Shown here piece by piece: positions 6,185 through 47,010 of a stretch of DNA of 64,000 nt; the first letter of the stretch is position 1; each line of letters opens with the position of its first letter. This stretch comes from Macrostomum lignano. Lineage: Eukaryota. The stretch lies in contig NIVC01002211.1 in NCBI GenBank assembly GCA_002269645.1, positions 128,045 through 192,044 of the forward strand. Direction: 5' to 3'. Both the position numbers and the translations under genes were made by a program. The notes under the pieces were generated by a model, which was given only the letters and a program-made list of their open reading frames with translations, searched no databases and was not told the origin of the DNA.

Positions 6185-8089
6185 TTAATAATAATGTCCG
6201 CCTCTTTGATCTCTACCGCCGCGACCAGATTGCCCGCCTCTTTGAACTCTACCGCCGCGAGCAGATTGCCATTCTCTTTGATCTCCGCCGCTGCGAGCAG
6301 ATTGCCATTCTCTTTGATCTCTACCGCCGCGAGCAGATTGCCATTCTCTTTGATCTCCGCCGCTGCGAGCAGATTGCCATTCTCTTTGATCTCTGCCGCC
6401 GCGAGCAGATTGCCATTCTCTTTGATCTCTACCGCCGTGAGCAGATTGCCATTCTCTTTGATCTCTACCGCCGTGAGCAGATTGCCATTCTCTTTGATCT
6501 CTACCGCCGTGAGCAGATTGCCCGCCTCTTTGATCTCTACCGCCGCGAGCAGATCGCCAGCGAGAAGATTGCCCGCCTCTTTGATCTCTACCGCCGCGAG
6601 CAGATTGCCATTCTCTCTGATCTCCGCCGCTGCGAGCAGATTGCCATTCTCTCTGATCTCCGCCGCTGCGAGCAGATTGCCATTCTCTCTGATCTCTGCC
6701 GCCGCGAGCAGATTGCCATTCTCTTTGATCTCTACCGCCGCGAGCAGATTGTCCGCCTCTTTGATCACCGCCGCCGCGAGCAGATGGTTTGCCTCCTCGG
6801 TCTTTTTGATGTTTACCGCCCTGACTCAACTGCTTCCGAGCGCCGTTACTCTGATTCCAAAGTTGGCATTCCGAAATCTCTTCAGCCTGCGACAGCCAAT
6901 TGCACCAGATATTCGAGCTGGTCTCCATAGCAACCCGGTCGCCAATGACAACAATACAACGTCTCGCTCGCGTAAAGAGAACTTCAAAATCCGACTGCTC
7001 AGCATCAGACAACAAGCTATTGGCATCTGCATGTACAATGACAAAGTCGGTCTCGAGACCACGGAATTCATCAACGCTAGCCACCTGAACATCCCGAAGG
7101 TGCAAGGATTGGCCAACCCGATCGGACGCACCTGACAGTGTCAGGACGGCAATGGCTTCCAAAGATTCAGTTTCCAGTAGAACAGCGAGAACCCGGTCAA
7201 TCAGCTCGATAGATGAAGCTGCCGAGCCTTCATCGCAGTTGATAAAGCAGACAGCGGGAAAAACCATCGGCGGCGGCAGGGTGGGCGGCGGCGCCGGCAT
7301 CTCGAGTGCCGGCCAGCTGAAGCATCGGCTGGGCAGGCTGGCCAGTTCCGGCCGCATCCGGTGCTGCACAGTCAGCGCCAGGGCGTTCGACGTCGTTGCC
7401 GCCGCCACCGCTAGCCGATGGTCAGTTCCCAGCAGCACGACACGCCTGGAGCATCGGGCCAGAGCGCAGAGCGCGGCCGACTCGGGCGACTCGTTTGCAT
7501 CGTCAATCAGCGCCAAGGAAAACCGGACGTCGTACAAGCCGCCAATCGACGTCGACAACGCCAGAATCACGTCGGCGGAGCGCAGAAGGCGCTGCTGCAT
7601 CGTCTGGCTGTCGTTTAAACTGTCGTCATCCGTGCCGAACTCTTCCAGGCGTCGACGTTGGATTTGCGCGTCGATTGTCAGATCGGCGACGTCGGGAGCG
7701 ACGAGGCCAGACGATGGCAGGCGGAGCAGCAGTAGGCACGGAGCGGCGAGGCGCAGCCGTCGAGCCAGACTGTCGAGAGCGGCGTCGGACTGGGCGCAGA
7801 GGAAAATCGGCAGAAACGATGCCGCCGCCGCCGCCGCCGCCGCCGCCGCCCGGCAGACGATGCTGACGGCCAGCGCGGACTTTCCCGTGCCCGGCGGCCC
7901 GCCGATGAACAGCAGGCCTGGATCCGGTTTCGAACTCAGGACGACTGCCAGCGCGGCCCGTTGCGAGGCGTCGAGTCGCTCTAAATCTGCGTCGATATCC
8001 GCGCTTAGCGACACAGCTTTCTGCTGTTTTGGAGCAAGGATAGGGAATAGGATTATGAGGATGAGGATGAGGTTGATCATGATGATGAT

Positions 8090-8124
<35 letters not shown>

Positions 8125-8158
8125 GAGAATGGTGAGGATGATAATAATTATGATAATA

Positions 8159-8190
<32 letters not shown>

Positions 8191-8224
8191 GAGAATGGTG
8201 AGGATGATAATAATTATGATAATA

Positions 8225-8256
<32 letters not shown>

Positions 8257-8453
8257 GAGAATGGTGAGGATGATAATAATGATGATAATAATGATAATGA
8301 TGATGATGATGATGATGATGAAGAGAATGGTGAGGATGATAATAATTATGATAATAATGATGATGATGGTGATGATGATGATGATGATCATGATGATGAT
8401 GATGAAGAGAATGGTGAGGATGATAATAATTATGATAATAATGATGATGATGG

Positions 8454-8484
<31 letters not shown>

Positions 8485-8518
8485 GAGAATGGTGAGGATG
8501 ATAATAATTATGATAATA

Positions 8519-8550
<32 letters not shown>

Positions 8551-8689
8551 GAGAATGGTGAGGATGATAATAATGATGATAATAATGATGATAATAATGA
8601 TGATGATGATGATGATGAAGAGAATGGTGAGGATGATAATAATTATGATAATAATGATGATGATGATGATGATGATGATTATGATGATA

Positions 8690-8755
<66 letters not shown>

Positions 8756-11700
8756 ATGATGATAATGATGATGATGATGAAGAGGATAAACGAGGTAAAG
8801 ATAGGGATAAGTATGCTGCAGCAACGTGTCCAAAGATGCACTATTACGAGCTATCAACTCAAGCCGCGGTCTCACGCACTCTAAGAGCGACGGTTTCTGC
8901 GAGCCACCGAGTCACGTGACCCGTGCACTCGAAGCGGGCCAGCGGCGACTCTTTCGGGTGGCCCCGCGGATCAGCCAGCAGATCGAGCGCTCGCTTCAAC
9001 AGTCGATCGTTGCCAATATTCTCCTCGTTGTCAGCAGCCCGGAGGCAGCGTCTCAGAGCGTCAAACACTTCCCTGTAGCTGTCGATGCCACCCGCAGGAG
9101 GTTCGCGCAGCTGCCAGCAGCCGCCGCCCTGCCAACAAGCCGGCAGCGTTGTTAGGAGGCAGCCGCGCGAGTCCAAGCCGCGCAGACAGACCAAGGCTCG
9201 ACCGTCGTCCAGACGCCGACAGGCGACAACTTGAACAAGGCAGCAGAAGCCGCCAGCCGAAGTCGCCGATGCCAGCAGCAGCGACATAAACCGGCCTGGG
9301 CGCGGCTGATGTCGCTGCCAGTCAATCGGCGCCCGACTTGTCAGCCAAAACTCCGACAGTTCGTTAGCGGGATTCGCAGGCTCGACAGTCTCCGCCGGCA
9401 CCGACCGGTCGGACTCCCAGCTGTCAGCCGACAGGCCGGATGATTGACAGCCGCTCAGAAACCCCTGACAGGCCAGCGAGGCCTGGTGCCGCAGATACCG
9501 ATGCACCGGCGTCAGCGGCGACACCCTAGTAGATTCCGTCAACATCGGCAGTAGAAGTTGTTCAGCAAATCTCTGTGCTACGGCAGGCGAACTGGCGGCA
9601 ACGTGGAGCAGCGGCCACCAGCAGTGCCAGGCGCCGGCAACGTCCAGCAGCTCGGCGGTGGAAGCTTCGGCTAGCGATAAAAGCGACGACAGCAGACGGT
9701 CAGCGGTGGCGTCGGCAGCCAGGCGTCGCAGCGATGTGAACAGTTCCAGTAGCCCTGCAGACGGCTGGTCTCCGAACCTGACGGAAGCTGGGTCGAAGAA
9801 CAGCTGAGCGACAATCTTGTCGATGTCGGCCAGAGCTGAGGCTGGCAGCGGCCTCGGAGCCGCCAGCAAATGCAGACGGTCTAGCAGGGCCCGCAGGCGG
9901 TCTGGCACCGAGCCAAGCTCCGACGGTGGCCACGCGCGCAGCGAGTCGATGAACAAGCGAGGCGAGGCAAAGGCGACGGCCGCGTCCAGGCACTGCAGCG
10001 TCGGAGTCGGCGAAGGCATTGAATCGTGGGACGGCGGCTGCAGCAGCATCGGGTCGACGAACTCGTTGACTGCGTGAGCCAGTTGGGGCCGGTTGGGAGC
10101 TGGGAACTCGACCTGGGCAGAAGGAGACGGGAGAGTGCACTGCTGGAGAGGCTAGATCTACAGAGGCACTGTCTAGATCTGCAAAACTATTGTCTAGATC
10201 TATAAAACCACTGTCTAGATCTACAAAATCACTGTCTAGATCTACAAAATCACTGTCTAGATCTACAAAATCACTGTCTAGATCTACAAAATCACTGTCT
10301 AGATCTACAAAATCACTGTCTAGATCTACAAAATCACTGTCTAGATCTACAAAACCACTGTTTAGATCTACAAAATCACTGCCTAGATCTACAAAACTAC
10401 TGTCTAGATCTGCAAAACGATTGCCTAGATCTATAAAACTACTGTCTAGATCTACAAAATCACTGTCTAGATCTACAAAACTACTGTCTAGATCTACAAA
10501 ACTACTGTCTAGATCTACAAAATCACTGTCTAGATCTACAAAATCACTGTCTAGATCTACAAAATCACTGTCTAAATCTACAAAATCACTGTCTAGATCT
10601 ACAAAATCACTGTCTAGATCAACAAAATCACTGTCTAGATCTACAAAATCACTGTCTAGATCTACAAGATCACTGTCTAGATCTACAAAATCACTGTCTA
10701 GATGAGTTGCTCCCACGCAGATCTCACCTGTCGGACATCAGCGGCCCACCAGTTGACATCGGCCACATCCAGATAGCCAGTGGCCCGCCCGTCCGCCGGG
10801 TCGCCCTGGGCAGACTCGAGCACGAACATCTCGGCCTCAATAAATGGCACCTTCCGTACCAGCATCCCAGCTTGCGCCCGCCTCCTGTCGCCAGGCAAGT
10901 CGAACCGGGTCAGGTCTACGCTGATGGACGTCAGGCCGTCGGGCCCGCCGCCGTCATTCAGCCACACAAAAGTGCCCCTGCGATCGCCTTTGTAGAGCTG
11001 CAACGAGTGCTCCGATAAGTCCAGGCTGTGTCCCGGACTCAGTCGGTGCTGCCTACGGCAGTTGAGCAGGCCGGAGAAGAAAAACGCCCGGACACTGTCC
11101 GGAGGCATGTCAGCCCGTTCGCAGATTGTCAGCTGCCGTTGGAACAGCAGGGCGAGGCACAGCTGGTCTGGCAGACGCAGCAAGAGAAGACTAAACAGAA
11201 TGTAGGGATTTCAATTGAATTAGACTGGGCTAATCTCTCGCTCAGATCCCTAATCTCACTCTTAGATCCCTAATCTAACTCTCAGATACCTAATTTTACT
11301 CTCAGATACCTAATTTCACTCCCAGATCCCTAATCTCACTCTTAGATCCCTAATCTCACTCTCAGATACCTAATCTCACTCTCAGATACCTAATTTCACT
11401 CTCAGATCCCTAATCTCACTCTCAGATCCCTAATCTCACTCTCAGATCCCTAATCTCACTCTCAGATACCTAATCTCACTCTTAGATCCCTAATCTCACT
11501 CTCAGATACCTAATCTCACTCTCAGATACCTAATTTCACTCTCAGATCCCTAATCTCACTCTCAGATCCCTAATCTCACTCTCAGATCCCTAATCTCACT
11601 CTCAGATCCCTAATTTCACTCTCAGATCCCTAATCTCACTCTTAGATCCCTAATCTAACTCTCAGATACCTAATTTTACTCTCAGATACCTAATTTCACT

Positions 11701-17700: not shown

Positions 17701-20700
17701 CACGCCTTTGTAGCCGCGGTAGCGGATCTGGGCGGCGGTTGACAACTTCGATGCTTAAATTACTTATAAATACCAAATATAGACGGAGTGGGGTGGCTGC
17801 AGATAAGGCAGGGAGTGGGGTGGCTGCAGATAAGGCAGGGAGTGGGGTGGCTGCAGATAAGGCAGGGAGTGGGGTAGCTGCAGATAAGGCAGGGAGTGGG
17901 GTGGCTGCATATAAGGCAGGGAGTGGGGTGGCTGCAGATAAGACAGGGAGTGGGGTGGTTGCAGATAAAACACGGAGTGGGGTGGCTGCAGATAAGGCAG
18001 GGAGTGGGGTGGCTGCAGATAAGGCAGGGAGTGGGGTGGCTGCAGATAAGGCAGGGAGTGGGGTAGCTGCAGATAAGACAGGGAGTGAGGTGGTTGCAGA
18101 TAAAACACGGAGTGGGGTGGCTGCATGGAAGGCAGGGAGTGGGGTGGCTGCATATAAGGCAGGGAGTGGGGTGGTTGCAGATAAAACACGGAGTGGGGTG
18201 GCTGCAGGTAAGGCAGAGTTAAGGTTAAATTTGCATTCAGATAGCCGTCCCCTAACCTGATAGACGGACGGTAGGGCAGCTTGGCGTGCAGCGGGTCCGT
18301 CGCCGTCTGCGCACCCCATGGACGCCAGGAACTCCTCGTCCGTGTCGTCGCCTTCGCCGAACACACCGGCGCAGATTTGACGAGCCAGCTCTGGACTGAC
18401 GCTGCCGCAGCCGTCGGTGAAACAACTGCGAGCGTTTTGAATGTCAGCAGCTTCGATCAGCCAGTCAGACGGAACCGTCACGTGACTGGGGCGGACAGAG
18501 CTGAATAGCAGGCCGATTCTGGCCTGGCGCTTGGGCACGCTTGGGATCGCCTGAGAATCACGCGGACGGATTTCAATTCATTTTAAGCATGCTATTTGCA
18601 ACAGAATTTGCAACTAGATAGTGACTCATTCCGTAAACTAATATGTGACTAGTTCCGTGAACTGATCAGTGACTCATTTCGTAAGCTAGACAGTGACCCA
18701 TTCCGTAAGCTAGGCAGTGACTCATTCCGTAAGCTAGACAGTGACCCATTCCGTAAGCTAGACAGTGACCCATTCCGTAAGCTAGGCAGTGACTCATTCC
18801 GTAAGCTAGACAGTGACTCATTCCGTAAGCTAGACAGTGACTCATCAACGAATACAAGAGAAACTCACTAGAAAGGGATTTACTTAAAATGGGCAAAAAT
18901 CTCACCTGAAACTCCCCGTGCGAGGCCAACACAGCCTCCGCATCGGAGGCGCCGCCCTGCCACAGGTAGCACTTGCGCTGCTTCAATCCGCCAGAGCTGC
19001 AGCCCAGATATGAGAATTGCTGCCCAGCAACTAGCAGCGAGTTTCCCTCTAGTAGAAAATGCTCCACAGTCGAGCTGGGCACCCGCTGTTCGAACTGCAA
19101 CAACAGAAGCCGATCGGGACCTTCAACATCTATCAATCGGTTCTCTACCAACTCCCAGGACTGTTTGGCGAAGTGCTCCGACACAGTCAGCACCCGGATT
19201 CGGTGCCCGCGCTGTCGCCGACTGCTCGACTGATTGTGGAGAAGCGACAACGGTACTTTGTTGCCGCAGTCCTGAGCTGACGGAGGCGGATCCACGTAGA
19301 AGGCCAGATGATGCAGAATCGACTGCTTGACAGCTGGCTTCTTCTTTTTGGCGCCCAGCTCGGCGTAGTGCTTCAGCGAGGCCGTTGCTAGGGGAAACTC
19401 GCCTTCGATTGCGCTGTTCAGGGATCTTTGGCGGATGAAGGGGATGGGGGTAAATTGAATAGTTTGATTGACAGCCCTGTCTGATGGACAGTAGTAATTT
19501 TCGGCCAGTTATGTACTTTTAATTTTACTCTCTTCTTTCGCTCTGATTACTCACATTCCACAGGTACTTCCCATTATTTTTTTCTCATTTCTTATCTATT
19601 GCGATTTCCTAATCTTTGCGTCTCATTACTCACGATTCCCTGATTCTCACATCTCATCATTCACGATTCCCAAATCATGTATCACCATTCACGATTACCT
19701 GATCCTCACGTCTCATCATTCACGATTCCCAAATCATGTATCACCATTCACGATTACCTGATCCTCACGTCTCATCATTCACGATTCCCAAATCATGTAT
19801 CACCATTCACGATTACCTGATCCTCACGTCTCATCATTCACGATTCCCAAATCATGTATCACCATTCACGATTACCTGATCCTCACGTCTCATCATTCAC
19901 GATTCCCAAATCATGTATCACCATTCACGATTACCTGATCCTCACGTCTCATCATTCACGATTCCCAAATCATGTATCACCATTCACGATTACTTGATCC
20001 TCACGTCTCATCATTCACGATTCCCAAATCCTCACTTATCGTCATTCACATTTTTAATGCTTCGGAGGGTCTCTAGAGCCTAGTTTGTTACAGATAGAAA
20101 GTTAAGCAAAGCCGGCTGTGGTTAGTACTTCACGCAGAGCTGCACTCACTTCGCCGCGGCAGCCAGGCCATCCTCAGTGGAAGCGTCAACAACCAGCCCC
20201 ATGAGTGGCACCAACAGGTGGTCGCACAGTTCAACGAATTCTTTCACATATTCCTCGTCAACCGCGGCGTTGAAGTCAACAACTGGACGGCGAATTAGCA
20301 CGACAAGGGAGCTGCGGTAGAGGGCGACGCTCTCGCCCAGCTGTCCGTCGACAATGTCGACGTCCGTTCGGCCATGCTCGAGCAGCAAGTCTAGCGCCGA
20401 ATTGGCGCTGGCAAAATCTGGCGCCATCGACTCCTCTTGGCGCCGAATTTCGGCCAGAGACGAATCGAAATTTTCGCATCGAGTTCGTCGAATCGTTCGC
20501 CGGCGACATCTGCGCAGAGCGTCGGAGTGGCGACACGCGGCCAGCAGACGGTCCTGAAGCTCTTCAAGGCTGCGACCGCAGAGAATCAGGCGCATGTGGG
20601 AGCTGCAAGATGTGGGGATGTAGGGTTTTATGGATGTAGGGATGCAGGGTTTTATCGATGTAGGGATGTAGGGTTTTATGGGTGTAGGGATGAAGGGTTT

Positions 20701-21810
20701 TATGGATGTAGGGATGCAGGGTTTTATGGATGTATGGATGTACCATGTAGGGTTTTATCGATGTAGGGATTTAGTGTTTTATGGATGTAGGGATGTAGGG
20801 TTTTATGGATGTAGGGATGTAGGGTTTATGGATGTAGGGATGTAGGGATGTTTTATGGATGTAGGGATGTAGGGATGTTTTTATTGATGTAGGGATGTAG
20901 GGTTTATGAATGTAGGGATGTAGGGTTTTATGGATGTAGGGATGTTGGGTTTTTTGGATGTAGGGATGTAGGGTTTATGGATGTAGGGATGTAGGGTTTT
21001 ATGGATGTAGGGATGTTGGGTTTTTTGGATGTAGGGATGTAGGGTTTATGGATGTAGGGATGTAGGGATGTAGTGATGTGGGGATGTAGGATTTTATGCA
21101 TGTAAGGCAGTAGAAATTGTAGGGTCGTGTAGATGCAGGGATGTAGGTTTGTAAGGATGCAGACACGTAAGGTAACGGATGCAGAGCTGTAGGGATGTAG
21201 GGCTGTTGACTAAACAATTATAAGCAAAAGCCCAATAATGTTTAGTTTAGCAGCTTAGATGACACTGATAAAGAAGCAGATAAATAAGTAACAGGTTAGA
21301 CTACAATGGTTTTAATTAATCATTAAAAATGAATAATTTATCTGTTGCGATTGTGTTAGACATTATTGCTCAGTATATATTTCCACTCTCTAAATAGAAT
21401 ATCAATGTTTAAACAATTTGAAATTCAAACAAAAACAAACAAAAAACGAAGTCCAACACCTAAAGACAAGAGTACCAGGGTAAATAAAACAAATAAAAGT
21501 TAGCAACAATATCTGGAAGTGCGGCGAATATTTTTATAACAGGCCGGAAAAAATCAGCCATTAGGGCAAGTGCGTTACTAAAAAATTGAGATAAAAAATG
21601 TTCTAGTCAGAGTATGGAATGTAATAACAATGCCTGGTATTAAGTATATAGCTGCTTTGTAAATAATACAACTATTGAGACACACTATACTAGCCCACCG
21701 TGACTGCTGCTAATGGAATGCTTTCGAATTTTTTTTTATTAAAAAATGAAATTTGCAAGCAAAACAATTACCTTAAAAAATCGATGAGATGGGAGGCAGA
21801 GGTGTATACA
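6185..21810 (-). CDS. Cellular RNA-dependent RNA polymerase (RNAi-type) fused to a C-terminal Upf1-like SF1 helicase and an RGG-repeat tail; 5' end unresolved
   Basis: Exons (minus): [21810-21772 tentative], 20569-20150, 19425-18906, 18550-18257, 17727-17541, 17254-17064, 16292-15875, 15480-14911, 13101-12828, 11190-10728, 10112-8880, 8023-6185. Every junction is GT..AG and phase-compatible (6448 nt in total, 2149 codons after the first partial codon). Junctions rebuild RdRP motifs: GEFQ/AIPSVPKRQARIGLLFS, PSVYQ/IRYRGYKG, LNRQFITLLS/GLGVP, GSDLDGDQFFVCWDP/DLLP. AATAAA overlaps the TAA stop. Confidence 0.88.
6190..6790 (-). repeat. 36-bp coding tandem repeat (SARGGRDQREWQ, ~16 units)
   Basis: In frame with the helicase with no stop until GGHYY*; poly(A) signal at the stop. 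Confidence 0.8.
6870..8023 (-). CDS. Upf1/DNA2/NAM7-like SF1 helicase domain (terminal exon), degenerate motifs
   Basis: LDASQRAA (Q motif), GPPGTGKS (7877-7900), CAQSDAALD, IDDANE, QHRM, SVDEFRGLE, FTRAR in the expected order. Confidence 0.88.
8050..8780. repeat. (GAT)n-based higher-order repeat filling intron 8024-8879
   Basis: (gat)n runs punctuated by the recurring unit gaagagaatggtgaggatgataataattatgataataat. Confidence 0.93.
10150..10702. repeat. 21-bp intronic minisatellite (tctagatctacaaaatcactg)
   Basis: Direct reading; lies inside intron 10113-10727. Confidence 0.95.
11240..12740. repeat. 20-bp intronic minisatellite (ctcagatccctaatctcact), ~70 copies
   Basis: Direct reading; inside intron 11191-12827. 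Confidence 0.95.
13121..14860. repeat. Two abutting 20-bp intronic minisatellites (cactcagatagtaggaatgg, ~70 copies; then ggagtggcgccaagatgata)
   Basis: Direct reading; the unit switches near 14540; inside intron 13102-14910. Confidence 0.95.
15200..19425 (-). CDS. RdRP catalytic domain exons (eukaryotic double-psi-barrel RdRP)
   Basis: FSYLGCSSGGLK, FTDGCG, QIRYRGYKG, RPSMLKF, TKSPCYLLGDVR, HLVDCIVFP, catalytic DLDGD at 15900-15914, LFSRAVDAAKSG. Confidence 0.95.
15540..15830. repeat. Degenerate intronic repeat (cactctttaaagtacat core)
   Basis: Recurrent ctttaaagtaca motif in intron 15481-15874. Confidence 0.75.
16352..17030. repeat. 42-bp intronic minisatellite, ~16 copies
   Basis: atgaatctctctaatcacctgagagccggacaatgcctaatg; inside intron 16293-17063. 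Confidence 0.95.
17330..17500. repeat. 21-bp intronic repeat (ctacccggtattctacttaat)
   Basis: Direct reading; inside intron 17255-17540. Confidence 0.9.
17785..18210. repeat. 27-bp intronic minisatellite (gcagggagtggggtggctgcagataag)
   Basis: Direct reading; inside intron 17728-18256. Confidence 0.93.
18615..18845. repeat. 24-bp intronic repeat (gtgactcattccgtaagctagaca)
   Basis: Direct reading; inside intron 18551-18905. Confidence 0.9.
19630..20045. repeat. 59-bp dimeric intronic minisatellite
   Basis: Unit starts at 19662 and 19721; each unit has two related cacgatt-headed subunits. Confidence 0.9.
20605..21200. repeat. gtagggat(gtagggttttatggat) minisatellite
   Basis: Direct reading. 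Confidence 0.9.
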
Positions 21811-21867
21811 CTGACAGGGCGGGTGATGTGAGATTCCTCTGTGGCTAACTAACTCTGATGGGTTAGG

Positions 21868-22450
21868 ATGGGCTGTGGGGGATGGGATGGGGCTGTGGGG
21901 AGTGGGATGGGGCTTTGGGGGTGGGATGGGGCTGTGAGGGATGGGATGGGGTTGTGGGGAGTGGGATGGGGCTGTAGGAGGAGTGGGATGGGGCTTTGGG
22001 GGATGGGATGGGGCTGTGGGGGATGGGATGGGGCTGTGGGGAGTGGGATGGGGCTGTGAGGAAGTGGGATGGGGCTGTAGGAGGAGTGGGATGGGGCTTT
22101 GGGGGATGGGATGGGGCTGTAGGGGAGTGGGATGGGGCTTTGGGGGAGTGGAATGGGGCTTTGGGGAGTGAGAAGTGGGATGGGGCTTTAGGGGAGAGGG
22201 ATGGGGCTGTAGGCGGAGTGGGATGGGGCTGTAGGCGGAGTGGGATGGGGCTGTAGGCGGAGTGGGATGGGGCTGTAGGGGGAGTGGGATGGGGCTTTAG
22301 GGAGGGGGATGGGGCTGTAGGGGGAGTGGGATGGGGCTGTAGGGGGAGTGGGATGGGGCTGTAGGGGAGTGGGATGGGGCTTTAGGGAGGGGGATGGGGC
22401 TGCAGGGGAGTGGGATGGGGATGTAGGGGCAGTGGGATGGGGCTGTGAGG
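21868..22450. repeat. G-rich minisatellite (gggatggggctgtagggggagt), G-quadruplex-prone
   Basis: Dense runs of 3-5 G separated by short loops. Confidence 0.9.
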
Positions 22451-23549
22451 TAGGGAGGGGGCTTATTTGCAGAAAAATGCACAGACCGTGAGATTAATAA
22501 CACCTGCATAATTATGAGTATAGAGGCGAACATTACACAACATTTCAGCATGCATTCAAGTTGCAAATCCGATAAAACGATATTAGAGAAAAATTATTTA
22601 AAAAAACAAAAGTTAAACTCAGAAACCAAAAAGAGTAAAATAAACTTTAAAGATTGTTAGACCGCAATATCCAATGTATCAACAGTGAATAAAATTCTCA
22701 TCAAAGAAAGTAAACAGTTTACAACTGGAAGGCAACCTTAAGTATCAATTGTAAAAAATAGCTTATTTTATGATTTCACGAAACCGAAACTACTCATGCG
22801 ATAGTAGTATGTTCAGCAGTTTAAGAGTTCAATTAATCAATAGCTCAATAACGGGGTTACTTTTGTCATAACCTGGGTCAGATTATTAAATTTGTATTAG
22901 AAAATTCATCAAAAATTAACAAAAATTGATAATAAATAATAATATCAAAAAGAAGAGATTATAAACGTTATTTTCTGACAAGACGAAAGAAATTACATAG
23001 CAGAAAGATCGAAAAAGTACAAAGACCGGAATGACTATATCTGTTTCTAATTGACGGTTTTAAATTAGAAAAAAAGTTGTTTTTAAAAGTCCAAAAGTCC
23101 TTACTGTGCTACTAACAGTAAGGAAAAAGGAAAAAAAATCATTAAAAATTCGAAATTCCATCAACAAGGCGAAACACAGGGCCAAATTCTCTGTTAATTT
23201 TTAAAAAAGGCGCGAAATATTTAGGAAAAACATTAAAACAAATTATGATGTGGCCAGATTGTGGGAGATTGCGGACTGTACGATCGAGAATGGTTAGAAT
23301 GTTGTCTACAGCCAGCAAAAAAATTTGATCAGAGAGAGGAAAACTTCGACACCAGACTAGAAGTGAAAGCAAAATGGGATTCTTTAATCTGCATTAAGAA
23401 AATATTTTCAAAATTAAAAATTGTGTCAGTTGTTAAACGGTACGAGAATTAGGATCTGGGAGTCTGAATTTATGTAATCGGATTTTCAGCAGCAAATCCA
23501 AATAATATATGGGAGATTTATCCAAGGAATATTTAGGAGATTTTATCCA

Positions 23550-26303
23550 TGGGATATCCGGGAGATTGTCTATGGTTCCAAATCCATGTGATATCCGGGA
23601 GATTGTCTATGGTTCCAAATCCATGTGACATCCGGGAGATTGTCTATGGTTCCAAATCCATGTGATATCCGGGAGATTGTCTAAGGTTCCAAATCCATGT
23701 GATATCCGGGAGATTGTCTATGGTTCCAAATCCATGTGACATCCGAGAGAGATTGTCTATGGTTCCAAATCCATGTGATATCCGGGAGATTGTCTATGGA
23801 TCCAAATCCATGTGACATCCGAGAGAGATTGTCTATGGTTCCAAATCCATGTGATATCCGGGAGATTGTCTATGGTTCCAAATCCATGTGATATCCGGGA
23901 GATTGTCTATGGTTCCAAATCCATGAGATATCCGGGAGATTGTCTATGGTTCCAAATCCATGTGATATCCGGGAGATTGTCTATGGTTCCAAATCCATGG
24001 GATATCCGGGAGATTGTCTATGGTTCCAAATCCATGGGATATCCGGGAGATTGTCTATGGTTCCAAATCCATGGGATATCCGGGAGATTGTCTATGGTTC
24101 CAAATCCATGTGATATCCGGGAGATTGTCTATGGTTCCAAATCCATGGGATATCTGGGAGATTGTCTAAGGTTCCAAATCCATGGGATATCCGGGAGATT
24201 GTCTAAGGTTCCAAATCCATGTGATATCCGGGAGATTGTCTATGGTTCCAAATCCATGGGATATCCGGGAGATTGTCTAAGGTTCAAATCCATGTGATAT
24301 CCGGGAGATTGTCTATGGTTCCAAATCCATGGGATATCCGGGAGATTGTCTATGGTTCCAAATCCATGGGATATCTGGGAGATTGTCTATGGTTCCAAAT
24401 CCATGTGATATCCGGGAGATTGTCTATGGTTCCTAATCCATGGGATATCCGGGAGATTGTCTATGGTTCCAAATCCATGGGGTATCCGGGAGATTGTCTA
24501 AGGTTTCAAATCCATCGGATATCTGGGAGATTGTCTATGGTTCCAAATCCATGGGATATCCGGGAGATTGTCTAAGGTTCCAAATCCATGTGATATCCGG
24601 GAGATTGTCTAAGGTTCAAATCCATGTGATATCCGGGAGATTGTCTATGGTTCCAAATCCATGGGATATCCGGGAGATTGTCTATGGTTCCAAATCCATG
24701 GGATTCCGGGAGATTGTCTATGGTTCCAAATCCATGGGATATCCGGGAGATTGTCTATGGTTCCAAATCCATGTGACATCCGGGAGATTGTCTATGGTTC
24801 CAAATCCATGTGATATCCGGGAGATTGTCTATGGTTCCAAATCCATGTGATATCCGGGAGATTGTCTATGGTTCCAAATCCATGTGATATCCGGGAGATT
24901 GTCTATGGTTCCAAATCCATGTGACATCCGAGAGAGATTGTCTATGGTTCCAAATCCATGTGATATCCGGGAGATTGTCTATGGTTCCTAATCCATGGGA
25001 TATCCGGGAGATTGTCTATGGTTCCAAATCCATGGGATATCTGGGAGATTGTCTATGGTTCCAAATCCATGTGATATCCGGGAGATTGTCTATGGTTCCT
25101 AATCCATGGGATATCTGGGAGATTGTCTATGGTTCCAAATCCATGTGACATCCGAGAGAGATTGTCTATGGTTCCAAATCCATGGGATATCCGGGAGATT
25201 GTCTATGGTTCCAAATCCATGTGATATCCGGGAGATTGTCTAAGGTTCAAATCCATGTGATATCCGGGAGATTGTCTATGGTTCCAAATCCATGGGATAT
25301 CCGGGAGATTGTCTAAGGTTCCTAATCCATGTGATATCCGGGAGATTGTCTATGGTTCCAAATCCATGGGATATCCGGGAGATTGTCTAAGGTTTCAAAT
25401 CCATGGGATATCTGGGAGATTGTCTATGGTTCCAAATCCATGGGTTATCCGGGAGATTGTCTAAGGTTCCAAATCCATGTGATATCCGGGAGATTGTCTA
25501 AGGTTCAAATCCATGTGATATCCGGGAGATTGTCTATGGTTCCAAATCCATGGGATATCCGGGAGATTGTCTATGGTTCCAAATCCATGGGATTCCGGGA
25601 GATTGTCTATGGTTCCAAATCCATGGGATATCTGGGAGATTGTCTATGGTTCCAAATCCATGTGATATCCGGGAGATTGTCTATGGTTCCAAATCCATGT
25701 GATATCCGGGAGATTGTCTATGGTTCCAAATCCATGGGATATCCGGGAGATTGTCTATGGTTCCAAATCCATGTGATATCCGGGAGATTGTCTAAGGTTC
25801 AAATCCATGTGATATCCGGGAGATTGTCTATGGTTCCAAATCCATGGGATATCCGGGAGATTGTCTAAGGTTCCAAATCCATGTGATATCCGGGAGATTG
25901 TCTATGGTTCCAAATCCATGGGATATCCGGGAGATTGTCTAAGGTTCAAATCCATGTGATAACCGGGAGATTGTCTATGGTTCCAAATCCATGTGATATC
26001 CGGGAGATTGTCTATGGTTCCAAATCCATGTGACATCCGGGAGATTGTCTATGGTTCCAAATCCATGTGATATCCGGGAGATTGTCTATGGTTCCAAATC
26101 CATGTGATATCCGGGAGATTGTCTATGGTTCCAAATCCATGTGATATCCAGGAGATTGTCTATGGTTCCAAATCCATGTGATATCCGGGAGATTGTCTAT
26201 GGTTCCAAATCCATGTGATATCCGGGAGATTGTCTATGGTTCCAAATCCATGGGATATCCGGGAGATTGTCTAAGGTTCCAAATCCACGTGATATCCGGG
26301 AGA
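23550..26303. repeat. 37-bp minisatellite (gatatccgggagattgtctatggttccaaatccatgt), ~74 copies
   Basis: Unit starts at 23553 and 23590; only point variants and 1-3 bp deletions between copies. Confidence 0.96.
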
Positions 26304-26327
26304 TCAACACCCTCACAACAGAGCCAG

Positions 26328-29300
26328 TCACAGCCGCAGCTTCTCCAAGTCAAACAGCAGGATAACATTGCGCCGCGGGTCGCAGGCGGCAGCCAGACTG
26401 TCGGTAACTTCGCACAGGTCGGCCAGCAGGCCAGACTGAGTCTTGAACAGACAGACGGCCGCGTCGGCGGTAGCGGCGGCAGCTGTGCCGGCGGCGGACA
26501 AATCGAGCGACATCAGACAGCCAGCAGACGAGTCGTTCTCGGCCGATTTCGTGCAAACCAACCGGTCGCCAATGGCAACCAGAGCCGGTTGGGCAGCCGA
26601 CACCAGGCTAACAGACGAGCTGTTGTCGGATTTTGCCGAGGACTCCGATGCCAAGGGCAACAGGACTGGATTCTTGCCACCCGGATTGGTCACCTCCAGT
26701 ACTAGAAATTCGTATCTATTCGATTTGCAGCGCAGGGTGGCAACTAGGATGCGAGGGCCCGGACACCAGGTGAGTCGAACCGGACAGCCCGGGTCAGTCT
26801 GGGGCAGGGTGGCCCGGACAGAGTCGTCCGAGCAGGAGAAGATGAACACGCCGATCCGGGGACAGCAGACAAAGATCAGCTCGCCGTCTGTGGCCGCGTC
26901 TTCTGGTCTGCGGGAAGCGGCGAGCTACTGACTACAGCTGCCAGATCTACTGACTACAGCTGCCAGATCTACTGACTACAGCTGCCAGATCTACTGACTA
27001 CAGCTGCCGGATCTACTGACTACAGCTGCCAGATCTACTGACTACAGCTGCCAGATCTACTGACTACAGCTGCCAGATCTACTGACTACAGCTGCCAGAT
27101 CTACTGACTACAGCTGCCGGATCTACTGACTACAGCTGCCAGATCTACTGACTGCAGCTAAGTTCTACTAACAGGCGCCAGATCTAACAACAGGGGCCAG
27201 ATCTAACAACAGGGGCCAGATCTAACAACAGGCACCCGATTTAAAAACAGGCGCCAGATCTAACAACAGGCGCCAGATCTAACAACAGGCACCCGATTTA
27301 AAAACAGGCGCTAGATCTAAAAACAGGCACCAGATCTAACAACAGGCGCCAGATATCTAACAACAGGTGCCAGATATCTAACAACAGGCACCAGAGCTAA
27401 CAACAGGCGCTAGATCTAAAAACAGGCACCAGAGCTAACAACAGGCACCAGATCTAACAACAGGCGCCAGAAATCTAACAACAGGCACCAGATCTAACAA
27501 CAGGCGCCAGAAATCTAACAACAGGCGCCAGATCTAACAACAGGCGCCAGATCTAACAACAGGCACCCGATTTAAAAACAGGCGCCAGATCTAACAACAG
27601 GCACCAGATCTAACAACAGGCGCCAGATCTAACAACAGGCGCCAGATCTAACAACAGGCACCAGATCTAACAACAGGCGCCAGATCTAACAACAGGCGCC
27701 AGATCTAACAACAGTCGGCGCAGACAAACCTGCTAAGCGAATACTTGGCCGACACGGCCGGGCCGATGCGGCGCTCCGCATAGCCGCTGGGCCACACGGT
27801 CAGCAGGCAGCCGTTACGGTTGTCAACTAACAGAAGCCACTCTCGCACCGCGCAGGCCACCAGCCGGTAAGGATCAATCTTTGGCCCAGTCTCGGCCGGT
27901 TCGCCTTTAAACTGCAACTGGTTCAAGAAATTGCCGCCCTGGTTGTACACGCGAACGCATTTCACTGGCTGGGTCTCCACGGCGTAGAATTTTCCTAAGA
28001 GATGCGTCAGCGACACCGGCCGGCCCTCGGCTTTGAACGTCTGACAGCTGGAGTCAGTTTCCACTTTGCCGCGGCGCTTCTTTTTACGCGGACGCAGCCT
28101 CGATTCCATAGCGACGGCATCCGTCTCCCAGAACTCCAGCTCGTCTCGGTGCGGAGCCGACGCGACGGCTGCGGGATCGGCGTCTCTGAATTGTTGATCA
28201 AAATCGTCGACTAGCGAGGAGCCACCGACGCCGACACCGCCAGAAGTAGGCAGCATTGGCGACGGCGTCGCTGACGACGGGGTCGTCGTTCCGACGGCTT
28301 CGGCGGAGTTCACGTCGGCCTCGAAGTCGAGGCCGAGACTGCCGAATCCGTCAGCGTCGGCCGCTTCAATAGCGTAGTCGACAGCGTCAATGAGGTCGTA
28401 GAGTCGAGATTGGGCCTCCTCCAGACAGCAGACGGGACCTTCGGGCCCGGCCAGCCGACCGGACAGGGGCGTCAGCAGGCGGACCAGCCTGACCAGCTCC
28501 TCCATGTCCTCCTCCTCTTCCACCGCCTCCGTCTTGTCCGCACCGTTGGTTCTGCCGCCGTCGGAATCGGCAGTGTCGTCGGTGTCGACGGCGCGCAGAG
28601 CCCGGCCGCACTCGTCCAGCAGGTCGTCGAGTTCGCCATGGCCGGCCAGGCGGTCAAGCACGCGCTGCCGACGGTCCTCCAAGGCGGCGGCCGCTTCGTC
28701 GAAAAAAGCAACAGCGGCGGCGCGTTCGCGATTTCGAGCTTCTCCGTTGGCGAGTTCGGCGAGGCGGCCGACAGCGGCGGCATGGAGGTCAAGCGCCTGC
28801 GATGGCGAGGCGAGGGAAGCGCGGAGTTAGACGACAAAAGCTTCAACTTTCCCAGTGCTAGCCAAAAGCCAAAATAAAAAGACAAACGCAGGAACGCAGA
28901 TGTGCAACCGACAGCTCAGCTGCAGCCATTGCGCGGCGCATCTGAAGGCTGCGTAACGGCTGTTCAGTCCAAGGACTGGGGGGGTCGCCAAACGCACCTT
29001 CAATTACCCCAGCTAATGCTGGCACCCATTTTACAGCTGGGTGGAATGAAGCAATGCAGAGTTAAAGTGTCTCTGAGTGGGTCGAGAATCGAACCCCCGA
29101 CCTTTCAGTAGTGAGTCCGCCGCTCTAACCACTGGGCTAAAACCCCTACTGTAAAGCAGCACAATAAAAAAACGCAGTAAAAACGCTAAAGCGTTTACGG
29201 AGAATACAGAATAGCACATCTGAAGGTCGGGGAAAATTACTCGTAGATTTTAAAGATGCTGAAAAAGTACATTTGAGGATAAAAGAAAAATACATTTTGG

Positions 29301-29533
29301 TGCATGATTTAAGATACACAAAATAATGGGATTATAGTAGTATCACTTCATACAATGCATATTAGAAGCCAAAATTCGAGTTAAAACAGGTAAAAATGAC
29401 GCACCTGTTTCCGCAGCTCTCGCCCGTGCCCAGCTAAACAGGTGGGGCAGAGCCGGCGCGAACAATGCAGACAGTCCGATAGACGGCCAGGCTGACCGCC
29501 ACGATTGCAGTCTGCGCATTCGTTCATCGCCAT
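26328..29533 (-). CDS. B-box zinc finger + coiled coil + NHL-like beta-propeller protein (RING-less TRIM-NHL-like), 3 exons; may continue into the RdRP
   Basis: Exons 29533-29405, 28796-27730, 26907-26328; phases 0 and 2 match (592 codons including the stop). C-x2-C-x11-C-x2-C-x4-C-x2-C-x3-H fits the B-box type 1 pattern, followed by FFDEAAAALEDRRQRVLDRL (BBC-like), an acidic linker and CVRVYNQGGNFL / LLLVDNRNGCL / PEDAATDGELIFVC (NHL-like blades). Confidence 0.75.
26925..27712. repeat. 22-bp (ctactgactacagctgccagat) then 19-bp (ctaacaacaggcgccagat) intronic minisatellites
   Basis: Direct reading; inside intron 26908-27729. Confidence 0.93.
28896..29141 (-). mobile_element. tRNA-derived SINE in intron 1 of the B-box gene
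   Basis: A box TAGCCCAGTGG and B box GGTTCGATTCTC, then a ccacccagctgtaaaatgggtgcc central domain; second copy at 44712-44871. Confidence 0.8.
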
Positions 29534-29716
29534 CGTATTAATAAGTAGTAGAGGCAGGATATTCTTTAACAACGGCAGGTGTATATTTTTAGTAAAGAAA
29601 CTATTTCCGATTAGATTTGTTTTCTGCAGGAATAAATGAGAAACATGAAATTACCAATGCTCTGGTAGTGCTCTACTAGATTAATCATAATCTTAAGTAA
29701 CCTTCTATCCCTAGGT

Positions 29717-29790
29717 GGGCCGTAGCCCAGCGGTAGCGCAGCTGCTCTGGTGTGCCAGCGACCCAGGCTCGATTCCAAGTGCAGTCACAT
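29717..29790 (+). mobile_element. tRNA-like SINE head / tRNA pseudogene (different family)
   Basis: A box TAGCCCAGCGGTAG and B-box-like GGCTCGATTCC; the acceptor stem does not pair and there is no oligo-T terminator. Confidence 0.55.
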
Positions 29791-32700
29791 TAATTTGGGG
29801 CTGAATTGGAATCTCGGCTTGGCTCTGCTTGTGCAATTAACGGCCTTGAGAGCCAACCCCCCAAGACGCAGTGAAGTGTACATGCCTAACGATAATATAA
29901 AGTTAGGGCCGCTGTACACTCCTGTGTGATTGTGTGCCTGCGTACGTATCCGCGCGCTTGTGTGCCTGCTCAGGGGAATCGGCAGAATGGGCCATAATGC
30001 CTCTCGCCGGTTGTGTGCCTATGTCGCTTAAAGTGCGCCAGGGTGCACACAACCCCCCTGTCTCAAATAAAAAAACCTTCTATCCCGACTCTCGCTCCTT
30101 AAATTACTGCGACGCAAGTGACTCTGGGGCCATAGAATCGTATCTGAGGCGTATTGAAGTCGCTGTAGAATCACAGAGTTGCGTCTAGAGCACATCTGCG
30201 TCATTTTATGAATTAGAAATGCATTTTGCATTTATAACAGCTTTATTTAGTTTACTTGTGTTAGTAGAAAGTTAAGCGCTAACACAACGACTCTTGGACG
30301 ACTCTTTTGCAACTCTGCAACTGATGTGATGCGCTCGTGACTCAACAGCCGCCTCTCTCCTGTTGTATCTCAGACTGAACAGGTTGAATCAAAGGACACA
30401 AGTTCGATTCCTGACATGGCTAAATTTATTTGCAATACTGAACTTGTGCTTAGTATTGAGATCAGTTGAAGGGAGTGCTACTTTAAAAAGAATCAGAACG
30501 ATGTCCATTGTACCATTATAACCAACTACCCTTCACTTCTCTGTTATCCAAGTGAAAAGAAACCTGTATTTAAAATATGGAATACTGGGCCTATTTTACT
30601 CATTTTCTATGCATGATTGTCTAACCTAAGGGAAATAGATACTGTATCAAAAAATCGAGCCAACTAAGAGCATATAGCATTAGTTTTCTGATGCAGAGCA
30701 TGGCATTTAAACTAGGTCAACTACATATGGCCACAATTTAGATTCAATGAGGGGCTAGAAGTATAAATTTTTAATTGAATTTACATAGGCCTACTTTCCT
30801 TTTTATTTAAGAAGCATTGTACAATAAGCTATGATGATGTTCCCTATTAGAATAAATTTTCAAGCATGGAAATTGGCCAAAATGCACAAATAATTTATTA
30901 GTCTCTTATTTAGTATCATTTGCTAGGCTTCTGAACTTAGTGGAATTTGCCATTTATTTTCTTAGTTGTAATAGGAATTATCCTATCTAAGTCTGTCACA
31001 GGCTACAAAGCTATATCCAATATATTTTTATAATAAAAATATCTAATGAACTATCTAAACTTGTCAAAAGCAATCAATTTAGGCATATAACCCATTTTCT
31101 TTTTTACAAAGGCAATTGCTATATCATGCCACTCTTTTTTCCCTTTTGCTATATCACAGTGTATCACTAAAGGGATCTATTTAAAAGTAAGGCAATTGGC
31201 CAATTTAACAAATAATATCTTTTAATAGGAATCTAAAAAATAATTAAATAACAAATGACTAAATTAAAAGTTGATTTTAACCTAACTCTTAGTATACAAG
31301 CCTTATTTATTTATCTACACATGAAATTGACAATAAAAGTAAAATAATTGCTATATATTATTCTAATTATCTAGCTTAGATATATAAATTGCTTTGTAAT
31401 ACTTTGTCAAAATGGTAATTGTATGCATTTTATTTAAAGTACCTTCTTATTTTAAATATTTTAAATACCATTTTAGGCCTATTTTTATCTAGACTAGGCC
31501 TATACTATGGTTGATGGTGGTTTTATCTGCTGCCAGTTTGTTGCCATTCTTTTGTCTACAAAAATACAATGCTGTCATTTTGTCTGCCACAAAATATTAA
31601 GACTAAGTATGATACTACTAGTACATTTAATATTGAAAATAAATATCTATATATCTTAAAAAGTACTTATAGTGAAGATAACGAATTCATTACGTAACAA
31701 GCACGAGCATACGATCTAAAAAATATTTTCTAAGGGACCTGTAGTATAGGCCTATGGCTACACGTACACTAGACCAAACTTTTTGTTTGTTATATGAATT
31801 TTGTCAGCTGAATATAATTGTTCATAATGAAAATGCATCATCATTGGATGGTGTCATAACAATGCTCATAACAGCCAGCTGATCATATTTAACAGCTCTG
31901 TCTTGCCGTCTTGGCCTTCAATAATTGCAGCTTCCATCCATCCATCCATCCATATATAGTTTCTTTTTTCAATGGATGTTTAAAATTGATATTATGTTTC
32001 TTTGAAATATTGCAATAAACAAAATTACGCTTGGAAAAACTGACATCCCACTTTAAATAAGCTTTGCTAGCTATGTAGCTATACCTTAACTTTTCTTTTA
32101 AAAAGTCATTTTGTCTGCCGGCAGACAAAAAGGCGGCAGACGAAATGACCACACACCTATATTATACTTTTTAAATCTATACTTTGATGCTATTATTTAA
32201 AATTTTAAGTTTAAAAACAATCTTCAATAGGCTATTAAATATGAAAATGAAATATGATCTTAAATATGATAGACCTTATACTAATAATTATTCACTAAAT
32301 TATTCAAAAATCTATTTTAGTAATAAAAGCCTAACTAAAAACTAATGCCTAGATTCTATCATCTATAAACTAAAACACAAACAAATCCTATAGTCATAGA
32401 CCCCTAATTTAGCTTCTAAGGAAATATATTTGGTATATAAAATGCTTAATTCGCATAAAAGGCCATTTAAAAAAAATAACTTGACTTAAGTAGGCCTAAG
32501 TTTTGTTGCATTATTGATACATCTAGATTCTAACATCTAGGATCCAGTTTTGCATTTACAAAATAAGCCTACTTTTTTATAAGCAATGAATTTAATAAAA
32601 TATTAGATTTATAAATATTATATGATAAATTAAACTAGTGACTGAAACTTTTTTTAAATACTAATTGATCATCAAACTAAGTTTTTGAAACTGACAACCC

Positions 32701-35597: not shown

Positions 35598-36120
35598 TCC
35601 TCTCCTCTCCTCTCCTCTCTTCTCTTGTCCTGTCCTGTCATCTCCTCTCCTCTCCTCTCTTCTCTTGTCCTGTCCTGTCATCTCCTCTCCTCTCCTCTCC
35701 TCTCCTCTCCTCTCCTCTCCTCTCCTCTCCTCTCCTCTCCTCTCCTCTCCTCTCATCTCCTCTCCTTTTCCTCTCCTCTCCTCTCCTCTCCTCTCCTCTC
35801 CTCTCTTCTCCTCTCATCTCCTCTCCTTTTCTCTCCTCTTTTCTCCTCTCATCTCCTCTCCTTTTCTTTCCTCTCCTCTCCTCTCCTCTCCTCTCCTCTC
35901 CTCTCCTCTCCTCTCCTCTCCTCTCCTCTCATCTCTTCTCCTTTTCCTCTCCTCTCCTCTCCTCTCCTCTCCTCTCTTCTCCTCTCATCTCCTCTCCTTT
36001 TCTCTCCTCTCCTCTCTCCTCTCATCTCCTCTCCTTTTCTCTCCTCTCCTCTCCTCTCCTCTCCTCTCCTCTCCTCTCCTCGCCTCTCCCTCTCCCCTCT
36101 CCCTCTTCCCCCTCTTGCAT
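35598..36120. repeat. (CTCCT)n pentanucleotide-based repeat
   Basis: Direct reading. Confidence 0.95.

Positions 36121-36228: not shown

Positions 36229-47010
<10,782 letters not shown>

Follow-up and report, generated by a model that had tools for sequence, protein, structure and literature searches.

A 64,000-nt stretch of DNA from Macrostomum lignano (assembly GCA_002269645.1, contig NIVC01002211.1, positions 128,045 to 192,044; referred to as the window) carries a gene for a TRIM-NHL-like protein and, downstream of it, a gene for a polymerase with RNA-dependent RNA polymerase (RdRP) and helicase domains. These are very probably two separate protein-coding genes, arranged head to tail on the minus strand. 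The initial annotation of this DNA had proposed either a single TRIM-NHL-RdRP-helicase fusion or two tandem, functionally linked genes. The fusion was not supported by the separate annotated coding sequences (CDSs), the N-termini of polymerase homologues, the C-termini of relatives of the upstream protein, or the score of the candidate splice donor, while the tandem genes corresponded to the public annotation, in which they were two CDSs in three loci. The proposed functional link found no support past adjacency, which was seen in three duplicates only.

Window positions 16328-39623 were the exact reverse complement of GCA_002269645.1 NIVC01002211.1:144372-167667, and since the same DNA was already annotated in GenBank, the fusion claim could be compared directly with the public annotation. 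The locus was present three times in the assembly (L002; L003, NIVC01001147.1; and L004, the window locus, NIVC01002211.1), because the sequenced M. lignano line carries duplicated chromosomal material (PMC8629364). The upstream-gene proteins of the three copies (PAA59930.1, PAA80208.1, and PAA71683.1; locus tags BOX15_Mlig008166g2, BOX15_Mlig008166g3, and BOX15_Mlig003028g1, respectively) were 589-622 amino acids (aa) long and all finished in ...LEKLRL, the CDS stopping at the TGA in 3/3 copies. In all three, the next same-strand CDS opened at the second base past TTGCAG, 6 nt before an ATG: at 17071 in L002, 20068 in L003, and 19023 in L004 (window 20601). The annotated polymerase products were 2129 aa, 1522 aa (partial), and 2146 aa (window copy). 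The locus tags have the MligNNNNNN.gN form used in the published genome-guided transcriptome annotation, in which reads containing the spliced leader (SL) marked trans-spliced 5' ends (PMC8629364). Both genes are thus already separate entries in the public annotation. Compared with the GenBank Mlig_3_7 annotation, the DNA and the exon structure and stop of the upstream gene were identical, the polymerase start region agreed, and the total length of the polymerase agreed with the exon sum of the initial annotation. The GenBank products are named "hypothetical protein"; the assignments of an NHL-like propeller and a degenerate AAA_28 domain come from the present analysis. A full-text literature search with the gene identifiers found no paper. 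The exons of the two genes were as follows.

29405-29623, minus strand: exon 1 of the upstream gene (PAA59930.1, BOX15_Mlig008166g2); 5'-partial CDS from 29623
27730-28796, minus strand: exon 2 of the upstream gene; helical (coiled-coil-like) region, disordered linker, and first propeller blades; 100% identity to the annotated protein
26328-26907, minus strand: last exon of the upstream gene; remaining propeller blades; ends in ...NVILLFDLEKLRL, TGA at 26330-26328
20150-20602, minus strand: exon 1 of the polymerase gene, after TTGCAG 20608-20603; 5'-partial CDS from 20601 (S-H-M...); ATG at 20595-20593
19425-18906, 18550-18257, 17727-17541, and 17254-17064, minus strand: polymerase exons; fit the annotated protein of the L003 copy (P0010)
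16292-15875 (catalytic DLDGD), 15480-14911, 13101-12828, and 11190-10728, minus strand: polymerase exons; fit the same protein
6188-10112, minus strand: 3' part of the polymerase gene; large middle exon from 10112, SF1 (UPF1-like) helicase (AAA_11 and AAA_12), and RGG-repeat tail; stop at 6190-6188

Ends of the two genes and the candidate donor

When 29533-29405, 28796-27730, and 26907-26328 were spliced on the minus strand, a 591-aa open reading frame (ORF) ending in ...LEKLRL was obtained, and its product was 100% identical to the GenBank M. lignano proteins. In exon 1, the acceptor CTGCAG (29629-29624) abuts the CDS start, ATGs are located at 29533 and 29527, and the donor after 29405 is CAG/GTGCGT (a slash outside brackets marks a splice junction). 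A word-indexed protein search with the upstream protein returned M. lignano copies only. An exhaustive search gave 11 relatives at E <= 1e-10, matching about residues 290-580, and six of them ended at, or a few residues from, the aligned ...ILLFDLEKLRL terminus. The last propeller strands (residues 568-583) sit just ahead of the stop. The NHL domain of TRIM-NHL proteins is likewise C-terminal, and the upstream protein stops right after its propeller.

At the start of the polymerase gene, the minus strand reads ...catcTTGCAG/CTCCCACATGCGCCTGATTCTCTGCGGTCGCAGCCTT..., and the ATG at 20595-20593, 7 nt past the acceptor, is in frame with the whole exon, the donor of which (GAA/GTGAGT) follows 20150. 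The initial annotation had found no convincing ATG exon in 20570-26300; this ATG, in the annotated start region, had been missed because an internal AG (20571-20570) was taken as the acceptor. Use of the resulting acceptor, 20569, would delete MRLILCGR, which aligned to the N-terminal strand conserved across the family. Although no stop interrupts the genomic frame for 53 codons ahead of the ATG, the 5'-partial CDS begins exactly at the TTGCAG acceptor, so that the transcript model starts there. The fetched product (P0010) opens with SHMRLILCG... (SHMRLILCGRSLEEL...).

As the query for homologues, we took residues 1-1138 of the polymerase, translated from exons 20595-10728 with the exon-2 acceptor at 19476 (the annotated product uses 19425). 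We obtained 42 homologues at E <= 1e-10, and the best beside the M. lignano copy were proteins of 1.6-2.0 kaa from a sea anemone (Actinostola), a sponge (Ephydatia muelleri), a diatom, many fungi, and uncultured eukaryotes. Pfam assigned them AAA_28, RdRP, AAA_11, and AAA_12; neither zf-B_box (PF00643) nor NHL (PF01436) was found in any of the 42. The initial annotation had suggested checking whether orthologous RdRPs begin with B-box/NHL domains; besides this result, no such gene was located within 10 kb upstream at four loci of other organisms. At the sea-anemone, sponge, and ENA loci (L006-L008), no B-box/NHL gene was called within this distance, and the closest non-Macrostomum relative (L001), on an 8.2-kb metagenomic contig, starts with MVRLFLCGVGGAGKT and has a P450 gene on the opposite strand as its upstream neighbor. 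The adjacency of the two genes was seen only in three recent duplicates in one genome, and not in the sponge, the sea anemone, and two metagenomic relatives.

In 12 aligned relatives, the Walker A motif was located within the first ~30 residues, and nine of these read M-(2-21 aa)-[IL]-[IF]-LCG-x4-GK[ST] (e.g. MSQKIILCGASSVGKTT, MTNIILCGCPGSGKTQ, and MACGIILCGASSIGKST), the rest having a VG/AG variant. In the MAFFT alignment, MRLILCG of M. lignano was placed on the first strand of the relatives, with the P-loop deleted, and the rest of exon 1 was collinear: FASANSALDLL with FISDRGPDPIVYA, and LYRSSLVVLIRRP with RYRxSLVVLxxP. When a profile of 13 relatives was compared with all minus-strand frames in 18000-30000, nothing was found upstream of 20754.

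The remaining end concerned the donor that the fusion would require.

26326-26334, minus strand: candidate donor GCT/GTGACT, with GT at 26331-26330; a real sequence, a poor splice site
21772-21810, minus strand: hypothetical 39-nt micro-exon; splice-like ends only, in no annotated product, and without homology support

The final codons of the upstream gene are ...CGG CTG TGA, in which the GT consists of the last base of CTG and the first base of TGA, and 2 nt are left over (phase 2). The coordinates and phase given initially for this GT-containing candidate donor, with the TGA (26330-26328) inside it, were therefore correct, as was the description of the donor as weak. When a matrix built from 11 donors of both genes (7 matching GT[G/A]AG) was applied with leave-one-out scoring, the candidate reached -0.5 bits, compared with 4.0-11.7 for the 11 real donors, and 78/275 exonic GTs (28%) scored at least as high. 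The candidate has no G at -1, no G at +5, and not the GT[G/A]AG motif of the species, and is indistinguishable from exonic decoys. Any TGA stop preceded by G yields "GTGA", and the phase match is a 1-in-3 chance. The motif GT[G/A]AG is that reported for cis donors of M. lignano (PMC8629364). Searches with both proteins found no annotated or database protein across the 26332 junction.

Several points weigh against two separate genes. The junction from 26332 to 20602 is in frame (...LEKLR-L-SHMRLILCG..., from ...GCGGCT/CTCCCACATG) and needs no micro-exon. The first ATTAAA downstream of the TGA is at 23388 and the first AATAAA at 21740, with none within 2.9 kb, in agreement with the initial estimate of ~3 kb to the nearest poly(A)-like signal. 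The three loci are recent duplicates, and not independent evidence. We infer trans-splicing at 20602 and 29623 from annotation, not from reads. Furthermore, the N-terminal match of the polymerase is weak: the profile of 13 relatives gave only E = 0.04, in the YRSSLVVL segment only, and the correspondence of MRLILCG is based on a short motif and collinearity in a global alignment. No Pfam match was found for the N-terminal polymerase domain, and no significant hit resulted when polymerase exon 1 was compared by BLASTP with the first ORF of L001, the metagenomic relative.

Probable trans-splicing, the spacer, and rival readings

In the two-gene arrangement, gene 1 (29623-26328) encodes a protein of ~590 aa with a B-box-like zinc-finger pattern, a helical region, and a six-bladed NHL-like propeller, and ends at the TGA (26330-26328). 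Gene 2 runs from exon 20602, with its ATG at 20595, and encodes ~2144 aa: a putative, degenerate AAA_28-like domain, an RdRP that retains DLDGD, an SF1 helicase, and an RGG tail. Both mRNAs would receive their 5' ends by SL trans-splicing at [T/C]TNCAG acceptors, and the 5.7-kb spacer would consist of an outron and a promoter for the polymerase; its role as an operon spacer is less likely. The analysis shows what the annotated products are and where they end, that both termini have homology, and that the donor is weak; trans-splicing is added by inference.

Approximately 30% of M. lignano genes are SL trans-spliced with a 35-nt leader, and the trans-splice acceptor motif is [T/C]TNCAG (PMC8629364). 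CTGCAG/29623 and TTGCAG/20602 both fit this motif, and the annotated CDSs begin there, so that the annotated 5' ends of both genes abut the same acceptor motif as SL trans-spliced M. lignano genes (Ustyantsev and Berezikov 2021, PMC8629364). In L002, where a T-to-A substitution gives rise to an AG 3 nt earlier, the start annotated for the upstream CDS is shifted accordingly. These features suggest that both mRNAs acquire their 5' ends by SL trans-splicing, which would also explain why no upstream ATG or 5' exon was visible in the initial annotation. The spliced leader itself (CGGTCTCTTACTGCGAAGACTCAATTTATTGCATG) was not present in the window.

In the window, the ATG at the end of the SL would be in frame with the leader of the upstream gene (29623-29534, minus strand; compared with 9990-10010 in L002 and 9990-10003 in L003), and would give MKTNLIGNSFF...MAMNEC. 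This leader is interrupted by an in-frame TAG in L003, which leaves MNECADC as the conserved start. On the polymerase mRNA, the ATG of the SL would begin an out-of-frame upstream ORF of 13 codons that overlaps the real ATG.

The spacer between the genes contained three minisatellite blocks and two single-copy segments.

20603-26327, minus strand: spacer between the genes, 5725 nt; three minisatellite blocks and two single-copy AT-rich segments
23545-26304: 37-nt minisatellite, 74.6 copies, 2760 nt; starts 24 nt past the TGA
23496-23567 (short 24/25-nt repeat), 21866-22446, and 20609-21104: other spacer repeats
22447-23495 and 21105-21865: single-copy AT-rich segments, 97.5-98.5% identical across the three copies

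The minisatellite starting next to the stop had been taken as a sign of an intron. Its position and length were confirmed. The reading as an intron sign was not, because similar arrays are spread over the whole window, including places where nothing is annotated (e.g. 35598-36102 and 38770-39198). A minisatellite was found in every intron among polymerase exons 19425-10728. The spacer was 3919, 5727, and 7143 nt long in the three copies. The copy number of its arrays (23545-26304 and 21866-22446) differed several-fold among L002, L003, and the window, with flanks ~98% identical, a pattern indicating that the turnover of minisatellite arrays is very fast.

Among the alternatives to independent transcription of two genes, an operon survived best, and is possible though unlikely. 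One promoter upstream of 29623 would yield a polycistronic pre-mRNA, and 3' end formation and SL trans-splicing at 20602 would separate the mRNAs. Consistent with this, the two genes are same-strand neighbors in 3/3 copies, the downstream gene opens at a [T/C]TNCAG acceptor, and repeats are known to inflate operon spacers in M. lignano, in which an operon is called at a repeat-adjusted distance of <1 kb with a trans-spliced downstream gene (PMC8629364). However, tandem arrays accounted for 3886 of the 5725 nt and left 1839 nt of sequence that was single-copy within the window (TRF). This adjusted spacer of ~1.84 kb, obtained by subtracting TRF arrays (the published adjustment also uses RepeatMasker), exceeds the 1-kb limit, so that the locus resembles M. 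lignano operons in its repeat-expanded spacer and differs from them in its adjusted length. In addition, the adjacency is not conserved in other phyla, and the three copies are recent duplicates. An operon, if true, would couple an NHL-type RNA binder to an RdRP-helicase at the level of expression.

Co-transcription of the two genes with a minor read-through isoform, spliced from 26332 to 20602 into an in-frame B-box-CC-NHL-RdRP-helicase-RGG protein of ~2737 aa, is very improbable. The in-frame junction, the common strand with nothing annotated between the genes, and the existence of M. lignano operons with repeat-expanded spacers (PMC8629364) speak for it. On the other side are the donor, which has none of G at -1, G at +5, and GT[G/A]AG, the 1-in-3 coincidence of the phase, and the lack of any annotated or database protein across the junction. 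If true, this isoform would physically join an NHL-type RNA binder to an RdRP-helicase.

The single B-box-CC-NHL-RdRP-helicase protein of ~2740 aa as the main product, formed through CT/GTGACT (26332), the micro-exon 21810-21772, and acceptor 20569, is scarcely tenable: although its phase 2 fits, the 8220-nt joined CDS is free of stops (1772 + 39 + 6409, as calculated initially, 6409 being the annotated polymerase CDS counted from 20569, in line with the 2146-aa product of this locus less its first two residues), no poly(A) hexamer is nearby, and the fusion would make biological sense given C. elegans NHL-2 with the CSR-1/DRH-3 22G-RNA pathway (PMC6351104), the annotation of all three loci ends one product at the TGA and begins the next at 20601, acceptor 20569 removes the residues that align to the conserved first strand of the family (MRLILCGR), B-box/NHL domains occur in 0/42 homologues, 28% of exonic GTs score as well as the donor, the micro-exon lacks homology, and the relatives of the upstream protein share its C-terminal end. 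The link of NHL-2 with the CSR-1/HRDE-1 22G-RNA pathway and DRH-3, which the initial annotation had cited, is real (PMC6351104). C. elegans is alike in having an NHL-type protein and RdRP/helicase machinery in one organism, but NHL-2 and its partners are separate, unlinked, interacting proteins, whereas in M. lignano the two are only genomic neighbors.

The NHL-like protein and the polymerase family

The N-terminus of the upstream protein contains a single Cys/His cluster (C-x2-C-x10-C-x2-C-x4-C-x2-C-x3-H, in exon 1), and no RING finger was found in Pfam. For the isolated first-exon ORF, the only B-box match was zf-B_box_Trim66 at E = 0.031 and 14.4 bits, below the cut-off of 27. The whole protein gave zero matches in Pfam at E <= 10, NHL included. 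In the AlphaFold model, built on a 12-sequence alignment, residues 1-31 (the B-box-like region) had pLDDT <50, long helices were predicted at residues 28-188 (pLDDT 40-59), and residues 291-589 formed an all-beta C-terminal domain with pLDDT ~90 over most of its length. The top PDB fold matches of this domain by Foldseek were the NHL propellers of Thin, TRIM71/LIN-41, Brat, TRIM2, and TRIM3 (E = 5e-11 to 2e-9, target TM 0.64-0.72), at a sequence identity to solved NHL domains of 10-16%. Pfam NHL matches were obtained in 3/12 family members (best E = 3.3e-4). Since Pfam was empty for the protein itself, the NHL assignment was made from these family members, AlphaFold, and Foldseek. The label "TRIM-NHL-like" (B-box-CC-NHL), given in the initial annotation, is thus reasonable and supported at the fold level, with a sub-threshold B-box. 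In RING-less TRIM-NHL proteins (Drosophila Brat; the NHL domains of TRIM71/LIN-41, TRIM2, TRIM3, and Thin), a B-box-like Cys/His cluster is likewise followed by a helical region and then, at the C-terminus, by a six-bladed propeller. The upstream protein differs from TRIM-NHL proteins in having no RING, a B-box below the Pfam threshold, and no Pfam NHL match of its own.

Six genes on one strand (586-892 aa), among them that of the relative P0063, form a tandem array at NIVC01001995.1:89188-111498 (L005), and the relatives of checked origin (P0063 and its five neighbors) were all M. lignano genes in this array, near which a polymerase was absent. This small NHL-like family is expanded at other sites of the M. 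lignano genome, in tandem arrays.

A MetaClust protein (P0004, 913 aa) represents an older gene model, in which another N-terminus is joined to exons 2-3 of the upstream gene; it ends in ...LEKLR, one residue before the stop. A near-copy of its N-terminal stretch, presumed to be transposon-derived, is encoded at window 41055-41480 (minus strand), ~11 kb upstream. Intron 1 of the upstream gene contains a tRNA-like stretch at ~29160-29085 (minus strand; GGGGTTTTAGCCCAGTGGTTAGAGCGG...GGTTCGATTCTCGACC), suggesting a tRNA-derived short interspersed nuclear element. ARAGORN and Rfam gave no match in the window, including this stretch.

In the polymerase, exon 1 probably encodes a degenerate AAA_28-like N-terminal domain (MRLILCGRSLEEL..., ...LYRSSLVVLIRRP...). 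Exon 16292-15875, with SGSDLDGDQFFV, matched the RdRP domain (PF05183) at E = 1.7e-37, neighboring exons gave weaker matches, and the DLDGD residues fell in invariant columns of the family alignment. On ORF 8101-6188, Pfam gave AAA_11 (E = 1.2e-15) and AAA_12 (E = 3.2e-8), and the helicase motif GPPGTGK was present. A single annotated product of 2146 aa bears RdRP, AAA_11, and AAA_12.

This polymerase is a member of an old, widespread, and little-discussed AAA_28-RdRP-SF1 helicase family, and has the same domain order as the proteins of Ephydatia muelleri, Actinostola, diatoms, and fungi (Ascobolus/Rhizoctonia). Animal and metagenomic relatives were 31-39% identical to the M. lignano polymerase in alignments covering 72-98% of its first 1138 residues. 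The M. lignano protein differs from its relatives in the loss of the N-terminal Walker A (MRLILCGRSLEEL versus IILCGxxxxGK[ST]), its length (2144 aa versus ~1.1-2.0 kaa; full-length fusions, 1.6-2.0 kaa), its RGG-repeat tail, and its minisatellite-filled introns. By its sequence, the N-terminal AAA_28-like domain looks like a decayed NTPase kept as a scaffold. M. lignano RdRP genes were reported earlier (PMC5594548), and an amphioxus RdRP candidate has an AAA_12 domain (PMC6396948); beyond the latter remark, nothing useful was found in the literature on RdRP-helicase fusions.

Window positions 8051-8780 are occupied by a (GAT)n/(ATC)n array, 243 copies long, which would read as poly-His/Tyr/Asn in the polymerase frame. 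When exon joins at ~8.9-8.0 kb, in this His/(GAT)n region, were sought by matching the annotated length, hundreds of spurious solutions were obtained, none of them convincing. Near its end, the L003 polymerase (P0010) reads ...LLADPRATRKSRRWPASSARVT, compared with ...LLADPRGHPKESPLARFECTGHV in the window, which is a frameshift. By this difference, the L003 copy, annotated as a 1522-aa partial product without the helicase, would be either truncated or mis-assembled.

Elsewhere in the window, ORFs judged by eye at 46381-47010 (plus strand), 53875-54558 (minus strand), and 59878-60594 (plus strand) look like part of a seven-transmembrane receptor, a PX-domain protein, and a PAN/C-type-lectin-like protein, respectively.

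Implications

Had the fusion held, it would have been a striking "Rosetta-stone" link of a TRIM-NHL RNA binder to the machinery of small-RNA amplification; in reality, the locus is an ordinary neighboring gene pair. The lesson is that, in genomes with SL trans-splicing, the apparent lack of a first exon may mean that a gene starts at a trans-splice acceptor near its ATG, and that the minisatellites of M. lignano are ubiquitous, and not markers of introns. The two genes have a modest value of their own: one belongs to an AAA_28-RdRP-SF1 helicase family, here with a decayed P-loop, and the other to an NHL-like propeller family that is expanded in M. lignano.

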